64,000 bases of DNA from Macrostomum lignano (lineage: Eukaryota): positions 45,307 to 109,306 of the forward strand of contig NIVC01000848.1 in NCBI GenBank assembly GCA_002269645.1. Reading direction: 5' to 3'. The translations under genes and the position numbers were made by a program. The first letter of the stretch is position 1; each line of letters opens with the position of its first letter. Shown piece by piece: positions 1-64,000 of the stretch. The notes below the pieces were generated by a model. That model was not told the DNA's origin, did not search any database, and was given only the letters and a program-made list of their open reading frames with translations.

Positions 1-226
1 GGGGGCAGGGGTAGGGGGGTTCAGAGTGTTGGGGTGGGTGCTATCGGGGCAGGGGTAGGGGTTCAGAGTGTTGGGGTGCGTGCTAGAGGGGGCAGGGGGT
101 GGGGTTCAGAGTATTGGGGTGGGTGCTATCGGGGGCATGGGGTAGGGGTTCAGGGTTTTGGGGTGCGTGCTATCGGGGCAGGGGTAGGGGTTCAGAGTAT
201 TGGGGTGGGTGCTATCGGGGGCAGGC
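1..226. repeat. G-rich minisatellite, unit about 43 bp, truncated by the window edge
   Basis: GGGGCAGGGGTAGGGGGTTCAGAGTRTTGGGGTGGGTGCTATC, about 5 copies. Confidence 0.9.
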
Positions 227-295
227 ATTCAGAGAGCTGTAGCGAGCAAGCGATAAGCTCCAAGTCAAAGGGCGCCCCGGCCAACAGTCACGCAG

Positions 296-3200
296 TCAAA
301 CCATGCCGGGAAGTCCGCCAGGCCGCATTGGCGAGCTGAAGCCGGGGGCGCTCAGGTAGAGCGGATTGGGGAACGGGCCCGAGAACGTCGGGCCGGACGC
401 CGAGGCAAACGTTGTTGCCGCCTTAGTGGCGGAGGCACCGCCGTTGCCTCCGCTGCTGACACCGCCGCTGCCGCCGTTGCCAACGCCGCCGCTGCCGCTG
501 GCGACACCTTCACCGGAGCCGGCGTTACCAGCGGCGCTGCCAGCGTTGGATTCTGCATCTGAAGCGTTGGGACTCTGCGGTTTCTGGTCGTGGTACAGGA
601 TGGGCACGCGGACCATGCGGTTGGCCGCCACCAGGTTCGCCGCCGCCAAGTTGGCCGCTTCGATCTCCGCGGCCAGCTGCCGTTTCCACTTGTTGCGCCG
701 GTTTTGAAACCAAATTTTCACCTGAGTCTCCGTCAGCTGCAGCGCGTGGGCAAGGCCGGCCCGCTCGGAGCTGGACAGGTAGCGCTTCATGTCGAATGTG
801 GACTCGAGCTGGAACACCTGCGACCGGGAGAACACTGTCCGGGTCTTCTTCTTCCGCTTCAGCGACGCCAGGCCGGAGGCCGTTGAGCCGTCCCGACAGT
901 CGGCGGCGTCGTCGTCTTTTGAGTCGTCGAGGCCGCCGCTGCCGCCGCCGCCGACGCCATCGTCGTCTTCGTCGTCCATGTCGACGTCATCGTCCAGCAT
1001 CGCGGACGCCGCAACGGCATCCTCATCGTCGACATGATCGCCTCCGGGCCTAATGGGGTCGCTCACGTCCGACGCATCGGTCGCCGGCTCCCCCGCCGTC
1101 GCTCCGACACCGTCCAAGGCGTCGTTTGCGTCCGTGGCAGCGGCGGCGGCGACGGCGCTGGTCGAACGACGCGACTTTGCCGACGACCCGTGGTGGCCAG
1201 CTGGGGGCCGGTAGCCAGTGGTGAGCGGGTTCTGCTGCTGCTGCTGCTGCTGTTGTTGCGGCTGACCTGCTGGTTAAAATTTAAGACAATCTTTCTCTCT
1301 TTCACTATCGCTTTCAGCTTGTAAGAGATGGATAGAGATGGATAGGAGATGGATAGAGATGGATAGGAGATGGATAGAGATGGATAAAAGATGGATAGAG
1401 ATGGATAGGAGATGGATAGAGATGGATAGAGATGGATAAAGACAGATGACAGATGGATAGAGACAGATGACAGATGGATAGAGACAGATGAGAGATGGAT
1501 AGAGACAGATGAGAGATGGATAGAGACAGATGACAGATGGATAGAGACAGATGACAGATGGATAGAGACAGATGAGAGATGGATAGAGACAGATGAGAGA
1601 AGGATAGAGACAGATGACAGATGGATAGAGACAGATGACAGATGGATAGAGACAGATGAGAGATGGATAGAGACAGATGAGAGAAGGATAGAGACAGATG
1701 ACAGATGAATAGAGACAGATGACAGATGGATAGAGACAGATGAGAGATGGATAGAGACAGATGAGAGAAGGATAGAGACAGATGACAGATGGATAGAGAC
1801 AGATGACAGATGGATAGAGACAGATGACAGATGGATAGAGACAGATGACAGATGGATAGAGACAGATGAGAGAAGGATAGAGATGCACAGAACTGGAAAA
1901 GGATGACAAGAAGTGATTGGAAGTAAATTTAAGCAAGAGCGCCAGAGTCTGCACAATTTACACATCGCAGCTAGTTTAACAAAACTAATAAAAATGGACA
2001 TACATTAAGGAACCAAATTTTTGATGGTTTTGTATTCCAAATTTACAATTGCAACCTGACAAGATCTTCGTGCTTAATTTTACAAGACTGGGACTACCAA
2101 GCCCCTCTGCCTGTCATTCAAGATTTTTAATTGACGGTGGCGGGCCTGGGCGGAGCTTGCTTCGAACTGTGATTAGCCACTTTTTTGACAGCCCCCCCCC
2201 AGGTGAGAATCGAGAGGTGAGACTTAAGACAGACAGACTTCGGAAGCGAAACAAAATTTATGTCGGCTCAAATTAACAACTTTGACTCTTAGAGAGAATT
2301 AAGCTTCCGGTGAATGGCTGCTCAAGCCCTGCTCCAAAACACGAACTGAGAGTCTGAGACAGATTCTAATCTCTTAGATCACTCGCTCTTTGTGTGTAGA
2401 GAGTCTTTGTGCTCAATGTACAGAAGTTTGAGTTTATGAAAACTCAATTATTGAGACAGGAGGGCAATTCGAATCACGCAAACTTCGAGCCAGTTGGGGG
2501 TGTGTTTTTTCATATAACCACTGCTCATTTTGGTAATCGTGCTCAATTCCAGGCATCTTTCAATTAGTTGAAAAAAAATACAGGAAAAGAGAAGACACGA
2601 ATTGAAAAAAATTTGAAAACACACCAACCCTGCAATTCCCTTTTCCCTGCAATATTCGGTTATAGCAGTGTTTCATTGCTGTTTATGGTTGCCTCTATTA
2701 ACAGTTTATGCCTACTTGACAGTTTCCTAAAACTATAATTTATCCCTCGAGGCGATTTCAAGCATAATTGAATCATTCTATTATTACCCAGCGCCGGTCT
2801 ACCCCGCCCCCAGGGCGGTGCAGTTGATGAAGTCAACTGCAGCCACTTCGCAGCTCAGCCGAACAACTCCACTGACAGTTGTGCAGCAATGTGCTAATCG
2901 TCCCGCCCTCGAGGCAATCCTATAGCTAGCTCATTTCTTTCTTTCGCAAAGTCAAAAAAGCAAAAATAATTAGGGAATTTGCGTAACCGATTTCTTAGGG
3001 AAGGTGCAGGAATCGAGAATTTCACTAACCGATTTTGCCGAGGCCGCTGCCGCTAACTGAGATCATCCCGCCGCCGCTGGAAGCTTCAGCAAAACAGTGG
3101 CGCAGGAAGGCAGCGGCTGCGGTGCTGTGCGGTGGTAGCTGCTCCTGCTGCTGCTGCTGCTGCTGCTGCTGCATAGGCGGCGCAGGCAGCGATAGCTGGT

Positions 3201-63679: not shown

Positions 63680-63749
63680 CTGAGCAGCGCAGGCCGCGGC
63701 CTGAGCAGTTCGGAGTGAGTGATGCGGGATTTCAGACTTAAGGAAATTG

Positions 63750-64000
63750 GCATTTGGCAGTCGGGGAATATTGGAAATTGAGAGTTAGGAATATTGAGAT
63801 TTGAGAGTTGGGAAAATGGTGACTTAAGAGTCGGGGAATATTGGGATTTGAGAGTCGGGGAAAATTGGGGATTGACAGTCGGGGAAATTGGGATTTGATA
63901 GTCGGGGAAAATTGGGATTTGACAGTCGGGGCAAATTGGGATTTGAGAGTCGGGGAAAATTGGGATTTGACAGTCGGGGAAAATTGGGATTTGACAGTCG
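63750..64000. repeat. Minisatellite of about 24 bp, running off the window
   Basis: GACAGTCGGGGAAAATTGGGATTT. Confidence 0.92.

Follow-up and report, generated by a model that had tools for sequence, protein, structure and literature searches.

Tandem arrays and genes at the locus

The window, by which we mean the whole 64-kb stretch of Macrostomum lignano DNA analysed here, contains HMX-like, Scm-like, DDX5-like and DDX6-like genes together with tandem arrays located in introns and intergenic spacers. Counting arrays that span 200 bp or more and have a unit of at least 11 bp, TRF and an independent lag autocorrelation agree on 27 arrays with units of 11 to 54 bp present in 5 to 81 copies. 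All of them run head-to-tail over 0.2 to 1.7 kb, and none exceeds 1.7 kb. Added to one (GTCT)n microsatellite found by TRF and autocorrelation and to a complex C/T-rich patch of short 25-, 27-, 41- and 54-bp repeats found by TRF (4227–4404, adjoining the array at 4395), they amount to 21,271 bp or 33 % of the window, and in the array zones about half of the non-coding DNA is array. A preceding sequence-only reading of this DNA had counted about 28 such minisatellites, and its positions and unit lengths agree throughout with TRF and autocorrelation.

Arrays with units of 21 to 24 bp occur throughout the window, between 1.3 and 64 kb. The first are a 21-bp unit array at 1324–1883 (26.7 copies, 94 % matches) inside an intron of the HMX-like homeobox gene on the minus strand, a 22-bp unit array at 4395–6049 (75 copies) whose plus strand is devoid of G and a 23-bp unit array at 12789–13241 (19.7 copies). 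The longest of all arrays, at 17204–18894, has 81 copies of a 21-bp unit and is followed by two 22-bp unit arrays in the DDX5-like gene, at 20126–21671 (70 copies) and 22102–23184 (49 copies). Further along are units of 21 bp at 42240–43209 (46 copies), 23 bp at 43915–44643 (32 copies, plus strand devoid of A), 22 bp at 47097–47756 (30 copies), 23 bp at 49489–50525 (45 copies, C-rich), 21 bp at 62665–62927 (12.5 copies) and 24 bp at 63744–64000 (10.8 copies, truncated by the window edge). Units of 42 to 45 bp make up the arrays at 2–225 (42 bp, 5.3 copies, G-rich, seen by TRF and autocorrelation and truncated by the window edge), 9745–10682 (42 bp, 23 copies), 13786–14663 (45 bp, 19.5 copies, 96 % matches) and 41037–41816 (42 bp, 18.5 copies); the array at 13786 lies between the SAM exon and one MBT exon of the Scm-like gene on the minus strand, and the two unit halves are dissimilar in the arrays at 9745 and 41037.

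Other unit lengths are 36 bp at 6589–6880 (8 copies), 19 bp at 7926–8800 (46 copies) and 17 bp at both 15759–16659 (54 copies, G-rich, flanked by two MBT exons) and 38329–39632 (78 copies). The 30-bp unit array at 23548–24306 (25.7 copies) has a related two-copy remnant at 24379–24438, and the 32-bp unit array at 25278–25997 (22 copies) shows a higher-order period of 291 bp, or 9 units. A 31-bp unit array occupies 37287–37804 (17 copies), and a compound array at 40187–40708 is based on the 11-bp unit CAGYGGACACA, with sub-periods of 20, 22, 31 and 33 bp. Two arrays appear young, each with 98 % matches: a 28-bp unit array at 45809–46139 (11.8 copies) and a 54-bp unit array at 48742–49013 (5 copies). 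The array at 61883–62132 has 6 copies of a 40-bp unit, with an alternate period of 80 bp.

Where genes were mapped, the arrays fall between Pfam-supported exons, in introns of the HMX-like, Scm-like and DDX5-like genes, and the exons next to them are intact, as are the splice sites, and the reading frame is kept. The most extreme host, read from the sequence, is a 1657-bp intron of the DDX5-like gene on the minus strand (20071–21727), with a GTAATT 5′ splice site, a TTGCAG 3′ splice site and an in-frame junction that joins DFMR to the 11 residues that follow. This intron is 93 % array, and only about 55 bp are spared at each splice site. A second DDX5-like intron of about 4.9 kb, which splits the Helicase_C domain, holds as many as three arrays, those at 22102, 23548 and 25278. 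Coding tandem repeats were considered and rejected, with 12 of 27 unit lengths being multiples of 3 against 9 expected and the mapped arrays lying between exons. Neither an Rfam family nor a tRNA was found in the window. Protein searches and a metagenome scan gave best matches of only 53–66 % identity, with the nearest relative for both query genes in ENA sample ERZ25070786.

Arrays occupy DNA of about 49 % GC. Two zones are free of them: 26001–37000, whose unique DNA of 40 % GC comprises the 5′ exons of the DDX5-like gene and an AT-rich spacer, and 50601–61800, whose unique DNA of 38 % GC carries the DDX6-like gene with its short introns. Self-comparison of the array-masked window yields as its sole repeats unrelated ones at 31–32 and 57–60 kb.

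Independent amplification in place

Each array was amplified independently at its own site from local DNA. Array-against-array blastn gave no match at E ≤ 1e-3 among the 27 arrays, and self-comparison of the array-masked window revealed no repeated sequence adjoining any array and no common flanks. Solo units were absent from the rest of the window, apart from remnants immediately beside their own array. Since there is no shared sequence, there are no common flanks and units are confined to their own array, amplification took place in situ, as the sequence-only reading had held when it described arrays without shared sequence amplified from local DNA. Unit GC likewise equals that of the local unique DNA (0.498 versus 0.499), and array edges are mostly sharp.

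The same reading had proposed a sequence-independent process, and in this it is supported: what counts is how long the unit is, whatever its sequence. Maximum k-mer sharing among the 27 units did not rise above genomic or shuffled controls (p = 0.13–0.61), so a core motif of the Jeffreys type common to the whole family was rejected; the presence of GGGAT, TGGGA and CACAG in 7 of 27 units is suggestive only. What the units do have in common is a strong strand asymmetry, with a mean |GC skew| of 0.425, where the unique DNA nearby has 0.255 (z = 4.3). Such asymmetry is typical of unstable minisatellites.

The internal structure of the arrays is that expected of real, evolving arrays: variant units shift gradually along them, as between the two ends of 20126–21671, variant units are interspersed and terminal copies are degenerate. 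Copy identity ranges from 83 to 95 % within the 21–24 bp arrays, and this class differs from the other arrays neither in array length nor in copy identity, making a single burst unlikely.

Unit lengths pile up at 21–23 bp

The distribution of unit lengths is dominated by a pile-up at 21–23 bp that is both real and unusual. This best 3-bp bin holds 11 of the 27 units, a count never reached in 20,000 draws from a uniform null (p < 5e-5) and improbable even under a smooth log-normal fitted to the same data (p = 0.002). A single sharp peak on a smooth background improves the fit by a delta logL of 6.6 and is centred at 21.96 ± 0.85 bp with a weight of 0.34, so that 21 bp marks its lower edge. Period bias of TRF is excluded: of 306 synthetic arrays with periods of 10 to 60, the program assigned the true period to 305. 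Just one of the 27 arrays falls in the range from 5 to 16 bp; three lie at 17–20 bp, none of them at 20 bp, and the tail reaches 54 bp. Clustering near two helical turns, at 21–24 bp, had already been noted in the sequence-only reading; as a 21–23 bp peak it survives both null models within the scope of this case, namely 27 arrays in one 64-kb window. A second cluster claimed at 42–45 bp fares less well: the 40–45 bp class contains 5 of 15 units against 1.3 expected (p = 0.007), which is suggestive only because the class was chosen post hoc. Units of 28–32 bp are not in excess (p = 0.2). A literature search found no description of a 21–23 bp unit-length mode.

Copy number is all-or-none

As a baseline we used about 117 kb of contigs from other animals covering 10 loci homologous to genes of the window; none of these loci has comparable arrays, hence they serve as a baseline only. 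No array of at least 200 bp with a 10–60 bp unit was found in these contigs. They contain about 8 proto-arrays of 2–4 copies with units of at least 17 bp and no large arrays, whereas the roughly 40 kb of unique DNA in the window contains no non-coding duplication of 2–4 copies with a unit of that size (Fisher p = 4e-7 for window versus control). Copy number in the window is therefore all-or-none, without 2–4-copy intermediates. With zero duplications of at least 17 bp, the spectrum of birth sizes from two-copy duplications is uninformative.

A model of runaway expansion gated by unit length

The explanation we favour, with a confidence somewhat short of even, is that the arrays are locus-specific minisatellites, ordinary in appearance yet of extraordinary density, produced by a runaway expansion that is gated by unit length. 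Each array grew at its own site from a different short strand-asymmetric stretch of local DNA. For the mechanism of expansion and the cause of the length optimum we propose the following. Growth would proceed when strands re-anneal out of register in the course of replication or repair synthesis, with slippage, synthesis-dependent strand annealing and unequal sister-chromatid exchange as candidate routes. Once a tandem duplication is present, expansion in this genome may run away, but only if the unit exceeds about 17–20 nt, a threshold above which a looped-out unit would be too big for mismatch repair and long enough for stable re-annealing. Longer units would then expand with falling efficiency. 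The product of threshold and decay would generate a sharp mode at 21–23 bp, almost nothing at 5–16 bp and a tail to 54 bp. Sia et al. (1997) reportedly found that mismatch repair in yeast keeps repeats stable when the unit measures up to about 13 bp, which it does not do for a 20-bp unit. Among the insertions created at the ends of DNA breaks, small tandem duplications of less than 100 bp are common (PMC8355091).

Three features of the data sit uneasily with this model. A simple threshold with decay predicts a mode at 17–19 bp, just above the threshold, and the observed counts of 3 at 17–20 bp versus 11 at 21–23 bp speak against it. The suggestive 40–45 bp cluster is left without explanation. 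Moreover, the model invokes generic properties of repair, yet the control contigs of other animals are without such arrays, so that a lineage-specific factor is still needed. The absence of 2–4-copy intermediates would equally fit the formation of arrays in a single step.

Weighing the alternatives

The length mode invites a structural reading in which units of whole helical turns (21, 31.5, 42 and 52.5 bp) are favoured, either while the arrays are amplified or by selection afterwards, because their copies would then share one helical face, whether on a nucleosome or within a repair complex of fixed footprint. When the spacing of a comb was left free between 8 and 30 bp, the optimum fell exactly on 10.5 bp (delta logL 6.1, p ~ 0.003 versus log-normal), three arrays have units of exactly 42 bp, the 40–45 bp class shows the enrichment given above, and for the 15 non-peak arrays a V-test at 10.5 bp yields p = 0.03–0.04. 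However, simulations with a lone 22-bp peak place the best comb at 10–11.5 bp in 50 % of cases and fit equally well or better in 16.5 %, and the Rayleigh test on non-peak arrays is non-significant (p = 0.15). The main peak at 22.0 bp corresponds to 11.0 bp per turn, different from 10.5 for free DNA and about 10.2 for nucleosomal DNA, and 20 bp is vacant; five arrays (17, 17, 19, 28 and 36 bp) are out of phase with helical turns and the three-turn class at 28–32 bp lacks enrichment. Inside the units, the harmonic nearest 10.5 bp takes up no larger share of spectral power than in shuffled units (Fisher p of 0.52 for WW, 0.20 for SS and 0.56 for W). Nucleosome-length higher-order repeats, with a period of about 145–200 bp, are absent: the 146-, 151- and 136-bp rows of TRF do no better than the unit lag, and the only higher-order periods are the 291 bp of the array at 25278 and two 2-unit periods. 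Nor are the units built from smaller ones as a rule. The sequence-only reading had described several 21–22-mers as dimers of 10–12-mers, but half-unit self-similarity is non-significant for all 21–24 bp units (best p = 0.059) and the 40–45 bp units are not 2 × 21, leading us to reject dimer structure as a general rule; the single 11-bp array it had listed, at 40187–40708, is the only one truly built on an 11-mer. The 10.5-bp constraint that it had put forward is thus not established, its comb being inseparable from a single 22-bp peak and without phasing inside the units, and we regard helical quantisation as unlikely.

A rather unlikely alternative is that the peak is regional, the window being a burst or a recombination-hot or subtelomere-like segment in a genome whose overall distribution is smooth. 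The sample is 27 arrays from one locus, and the confinement of arrays to zones of about 49 % GC with none in zones of 38–40 % GC indicates strong regional heterogeneity; dense minisatellites are also reported elsewhere in GC-rich, recombination-active DNA, the mouse pseudoautosomal region and bird introns being examples. Against this, the peak stands out even from the log-normal fitted to the same data, and the 21–24 bp arrays, spread window-wide and as varied in identity as the others, do not look like one burst. It is improbable, in our estimate, that a lineage-specific and sequence-independent process writes or expands arrays in quanta of about 22 bp, with about 42–44 bp as the double, by means of a fixed footprint or a template of small-RNA size and in essentially one step. 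One-step writing of this kind would explain both the missing 2–4-copy intermediates and introns filled up to the sequence that splicing needs, and the quantum would come from two helical turns within a repair or replication complex or from a repeatedly copied template of small-RNA size. A direct link to small RNAs, either through selection of arrays as sources or targets of RNAs of about 22 and 30 nt or through synthesis from templates of that size, seems distinctly improbable. M. lignano has small-RNA classes of about 20, about 22 and 28–32 nt (PMC4604429). Units peaking at 21–23 bp and three arrays at 30–32 bp match these in size, a coincidence of size only, and all-or-none copy number would suit one-step synthesis; the 28–32 bp class is nevertheless not enriched, and neither a reverse transcriptase or other carrier nor a common flank lies beside the arrays. 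We know of no mechanism that links a DNA repeat period to the length of Dicer or PIWI products, and phased processing has no need of one. Very little probability attaches to arrays, or array lengths, created or distorted by long-read assembly. The lack of arrays above 1.7 kb could reflect collapse and some arrays have 5–8 % indels, but an artefact would not pick units of 21–23 bp, the exons on either side remain in frame with undamaged splice sites, and copy variation is structured: variant units change by degrees along an array, one array has a higher-order period of 9 units, and terminal copies have degenerated. High tandem-repeat content has also been reported independently for Macrostomum, at 15 % of the assembly (PMC5730564). 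Least credible of all are internal repeats of a Helitron, MITE or similar element spread by transposition. Intronic minisatellites are known to arise from elements of this sort, as with the 35-bp Helitron repeats of C. elegans (bioRxiv 10.64898/2026.08.08.743475), but in this window nothing repeated lies beside the arrays in the masked self-comparison, and the arrays have neither mutual similarity nor solo units.

Significance

The birth of minisatellites and the determinants of their unit size are still poorly understood. Should the sharp 21–23 bp mode and the all-or-none copy numbers extend to the whole genome, they form a signature from which the machinery creating and expanding minisatellites can be read. 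The pattern would then explain the repeat richness of this genome and the difficulty of assembling it, would show how far repeats can fill introns before splicing suffers, with the spared splice-site margins seen here as the example, and would offer, in a tractable laboratory animal with defined unit lengths, a system to study the control of repeat instability by unit length. If the pattern is only regional, the window is a locus of a known kind in which minisatellites are unusually dense.

Comparison with known systems

Macrostomum lignano has abundant simple and tandem repeats, which represent 15 % of assembly Mlig_3_7 and make the genome hard to assemble; the accessible part of the report gives this fraction but no unit-length distribution (PMC5730564), and the window, at 33 % array, can be set against it. 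The PATCs of C. elegans are likewise intronic minisatellites whose periodicity has been discussed against the helical repeat of DNA, and they derive from one transposon-borne 35-bp family mutated into 10-bp A/T phasing (bioRxiv 10.64898/2026.08.08.743475). Unlike these, the window has 27 unrelated units, no carrier element and no 10–10.5 bp dinucleotide phasing inside units. At break ends, fill-in by Pol alpha-primase and end joining makes small tandem duplications (PMC8355091) that are sequence-independent, shorter than 100 bp and derived from local DNA, and are hence a plausible birth step. That process makes two copies compared with 20–80 here; given that the window is without two-copy intermediates, a separate and very efficient expansion step is needed.

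Also close are the classical vertebrate VNTRs, including those of GC-rich, minisatellite-dense DNA like the mouse pseudoautosomal region, which resemble the arrays described here in their head-to-tail units of 11–54 bp, their length of 0.2–1.7 kb, the locus-specific unit, the G/C strand asymmetry, the placement in introns and spacers of GC-richer DNA and the interspersed variant units. With head-to-tail units within 10–100 bp, locus-specific and G/C-asymmetric, the arrays, read here in one haplotype, are minisatellites and candidate VNTRs. They differ from the classical examples in having no shared core motif and no small arrays of 2–4 copies, in their sharp 21–23 bp mode and in a far higher density, which takes up about half of the non-coding DNA of the array zones and nearly the whole of one intron.

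Identification of unrelated minisatellite arrays

TRF and an independent lag autocorrelation concordantly identified 27 arrays of at least 200 bp in the window, with fundamental units of 11, 17, 17, 19, 21 (four arrays), 22 (four), 23 (three), 24, 28, 30, 31, 32, 36, 40, 42 (three), 45 and 54 bp. Both methods reproduce all the array coordinates and unit lengths proposed by an earlier, sequence-only reading. The window further contains a single (GTCT)n microsatellite and, at 4227-4404, a complex repeat patch; all TRF repeats together occupy 21,271 bp, or 33 % of the window. The earlier statement that the arrays share no sequence is upheld by an array-versus-array blastn without a match; within the window, no unit was found outside its own array except as remnants directly adjoining it. 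The arrays are thus mutually unrelated. Their edges are abrupt in most cases, with a few showing one or two degenerate copies just beyond the TRF boundary. The patch at 4227-4404 is C/T-rich, with periods of 25, 27, 41 and 54 bp at 2-3.6 copies each, and adjoins a 75-copy 22-bp array; here unit length may be undergoing remodelling at an array edge.

Distribution of unit lengths

As far as this window goes, the clustering of unit lengths is real and holds up statistically, the entire case consisting of 27 arrays in one stretch of 64 kb. Among 3-bp bins, the fullest is that of 21-23 bp with 11 of the 27 units, a number reached in none of 20,000 uniform draws between 10 and 60 bp; when the null is a log-normal fitted to these unit lengths, p=0.002. 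TRF itself showed no period preference: run on 306 synthetic arrays, it gave the correct period for 305. In a mixture model, the peak lies at 21.96 +/- 0.85 bp and has a weight of 0.34. The clustering seen from the sequence alone therefore exceeds chance for its main peak; the second cluster, at 40-45 bp, is suggestive, with 5 arrays where 1.3 would be expected among the 15 that remain (p=0.007, for a bin picked with the data in view). Units of 28-32 bp show no enrichment (p=0.2). Arrays with 21-24 bp units do not differ from the others in length or copy identity and thus do not represent a single burst. No description of a 21-23 bp unit-length mode was found in the literature searched, although one may exist.

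Genes, introns and compartments

The window is animal nuclear DNA with minus-strand genes, in which no Rfam families or tRNAs were found. An HMX/NK5-type homeobox gene (minus strand, exons in 299-1273 and 3028-3819, Pfam Homeodomain) encodes a homeodomain with 85-88 % identity to HMX proteins of many phyla in a protein search. Pfam also identified, on the minus strand, an Scm-like gene (SAM exon at ~13495-13780, MBT exons at 14666-15427 and ~16680-17145) and a DDX5-like helicase (exons 27736-28668, 26930-27439 and 21696-21995, Gly-rich tail 19592-20098), whose Helicase_C profile continues from position 79 of one exon into the next. A DDX6-like gene with short introns occupies 54000-56123. The best protein matches reach only 53-66 % identity. 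For both genes tested, the closest available relative comes from the long-read ENA sample ERZ25070786, with 53 % identity over 187 aa for the HMX-like gene, C-terminal motif included, and 58 % for the DDX5-like gene. The two contigs concerned, L001 and L010, contain no 10-60 bp arrays; L010 carries a single 95-bp repeat of 2.8 copies.

Around the genes that could be mapped, arrays occupy introns and intergenic spacers. The DDX5-like intron at 20071-21727 (minus strand, 5′ splice site GTAATT, 3′ splice site TTGCAG), whose spliced junction is in frame (DFMR followed by 11 residues), consists for 1546 of its 1657 bp (93 %) of one 22-bp array. About 55 bp is left array-free at each splice site, which suggests that arrays expand until they reach sequence required for splicing. 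The next DDX5-like intron, of ~4.9 kb, contains three unrelated arrays with units of 22, 30 and 32 bp. Two long open frames without a Pfam match were also seen, at 47751-48761 (plus strand, 337 aa) and 62970-63731 (minus strand, 254 aa); the former ends ~20 bases inside a young 54-bp array at 48742-49013, so that its 3′ end overlaps the array.

Compartments are sharp. Array share is 50-53 % in 1-26000 and 37001-50600, where unique DNA has ~49 % GC, and 0-3 % in 26001-37000 and 50601-61800, where unique DNA has 38-40 % GC; the DDX6-like gene lies in array-free DNA, as does the DDX5-like gene in its 5′ half. The sole long microsatellite of the window, the (GTCT)n repeat (285 bp, 35332-35616), lies in an AT-rich, otherwise array-free zone. 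A large inverted repeat with 270-nt arms (59276-59545 and 59726-59995, 97 % complementary, 180 nt apart), also within an AT-rich array-free zone, has a mirrored 56-aa open frame in each arm; its appearance is that of a foldback or MITE-like element. Dispersed short repeats common to both AT-rich zones (60663-60743/32019-32110 at 78 % identity; 57750-57784/30986-31020 at 97 % identity) are probable remnants of a small mobile element, and nothing like them was found near any array.

Copy number and composition

Outside coding low-complexity sequence, the ~40 kb of unique DNA in the window yielded no non-coding duplication of 2-4 copies with a unit of at least 17 bp. Control contigs from other eukaryotes (~117 kb non-redundant, loci around homologous genes) contain about 8 such small duplications, and arrays with 10-60 bp units that reach 200 bp are absent from them; the contrast between large and small arrays in window versus controls gives a Fisher p=4e-7. 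A model of steady birth and growth fails to explain this pattern.

GC content is 0.498 in the units and 0.499 in local DNA, as expected if local DNA was amplified. Strand asymmetry is much higher in the units, with a |GC skew| of 0.425 versus 0.255 locally (z=4.3). Introns mapped in minus-strand genes contain seven of the arrays (1324, 13786, 15759, 20126, 22102, 23548 and 25278); in this small sample, the plus (template) strand is strongly G-rich in four and strongly C-rich in none, so their pre-mRNA would be C-rich. On the non-template strand, such an orientation works against R-loops and G-quadruplexes. The motifs GGGAT, TGGGA and CACAG each occur in 7 of the 27 units against 1-2 expected, and GGGA in 13, compared with 3.6 for local DNA and 7.9 for shuffled units (motif-bearing units, from 7-13 arrays, include those of 6589, 12789, 20126, 23548, 38329 and 63744). 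None of the four is significant once all k-mers are allowed for, and a short recurring motif is a weak lead.

Proposed mechanism of array expansion

The data show that the arrays arose independently and in place, that their formation depends on the length of the unit and not on its sequence, that strand-asymmetric DNA is preferred, and that copy number runs away. As the mechanism of expansion we tentatively favour re-annealing out of register while DNA is replicated or synthesised in repair, with unit length as the gate. Loops of at least ~17-20 nt would escape mismatch repair and units of that size could also re-anneal stably, while longer units would slip less often. In yeast, mismatch repair reportedly stabilises units up to ~13 bp and not a 20-bp unit (Sia et al., 1997). 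The initial event could be a small tandem duplication of the kind that arises at break ends (PMC8355091). Length-gated expansion explains why the 5-16 bp range is nearly empty, why the lower edge is steep and why the tail is long. A mode at 22 bp, in place of one at 17-19 bp, is poorly explained by it, and it leaves unexplained both the 40-45 bp cluster and the difference between this lineage and the controls.

The sequence-only reading had placed the clusters at two and four turns of the helix and suggested ~10.5-bp phasing or selection linked to 21-24-nt small RNAs. Its amplification in place and its dependence on length rather than sequence are supported; helical phasing and small RNAs are not established. 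Helical quantisation of unit lengths appears unlikely. For a comb of free spacing, the optimum is indeed exactly 10.5 bp (delta logL 6.1, p~0.003 versus a smooth curve), but one sharp peak on a smooth background reaches a delta logL of 6.6 with one parameter more, and data simulated from that single-peak model place the best comb at 10-11.5 bp in half of the runs and match or exceed the comb fit in 16.5 %. Among the arrays outside the 21-24 bp class, periodicity at 10.5 bp yields a Rayleigh p=0.15 and a directional V-test p=0.03-0.04. Inside the units, the harmonic nearest 10.5 bp carries no excess power (WW, SS and W, Fisher p 0.52, 0.20 and 0.56), and the proposal that several 21-22-mers are dimers is not supported, no 21-24 bp unit being a significant half-unit dimer. 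Nor are the 40-45 bp units 2 x 21. TRF rows of 146, 151 and 136 bp are no better than the unit period, and there is thus no higher order of nucleosome length. The peak centre of 22 bp corresponds to 11.0 bp per turn, in agreement with neither free nor nucleosomal DNA; 21 bp is its lower edge and 20 bp is empty. Helical phasing as a cause is probably not shown either way. That the peak reflects regional sampling is a rather improbable reading, and a small-RNA link to unit length a distinctly improbable one: unit sizes coincide with the ~20, ~22 and 28-32 nt small RNAs of M. lignano (PMC4604429), a coincidence of size only, which bears on the arrays if their source is Macrostomum. An assembly artefact is highly improbable, and a transposon carrier is scarcely credible.

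Comparison with known repeat systems

Membership of Jeffreys' core family was rejected, since no core motif is common to the arrays, as was membership of the C. elegans Helitron/PATC system, the arrays being without a carrier and without 10-bp phasing (bioRxiv 10.64898/2026.08.08.743475). Nucleosome-length satellites were rejected on the missing higher order. Available passages of the M. lignano genome paper put tandem and simple repeats at 15 % of the assembly and contain nothing on unit length (PMC5730564). The arrays qualify as minisatellites by their defining features: tests of unit size, tandem arrangement, locus specificity and strand asymmetry all agree, in one haplotype. Beyond a standard minisatellite locus, these arrays are distinguished by their density, a sharp 22-bp mode, an all-or-none copy number and one intron almost wholly filled by an array.
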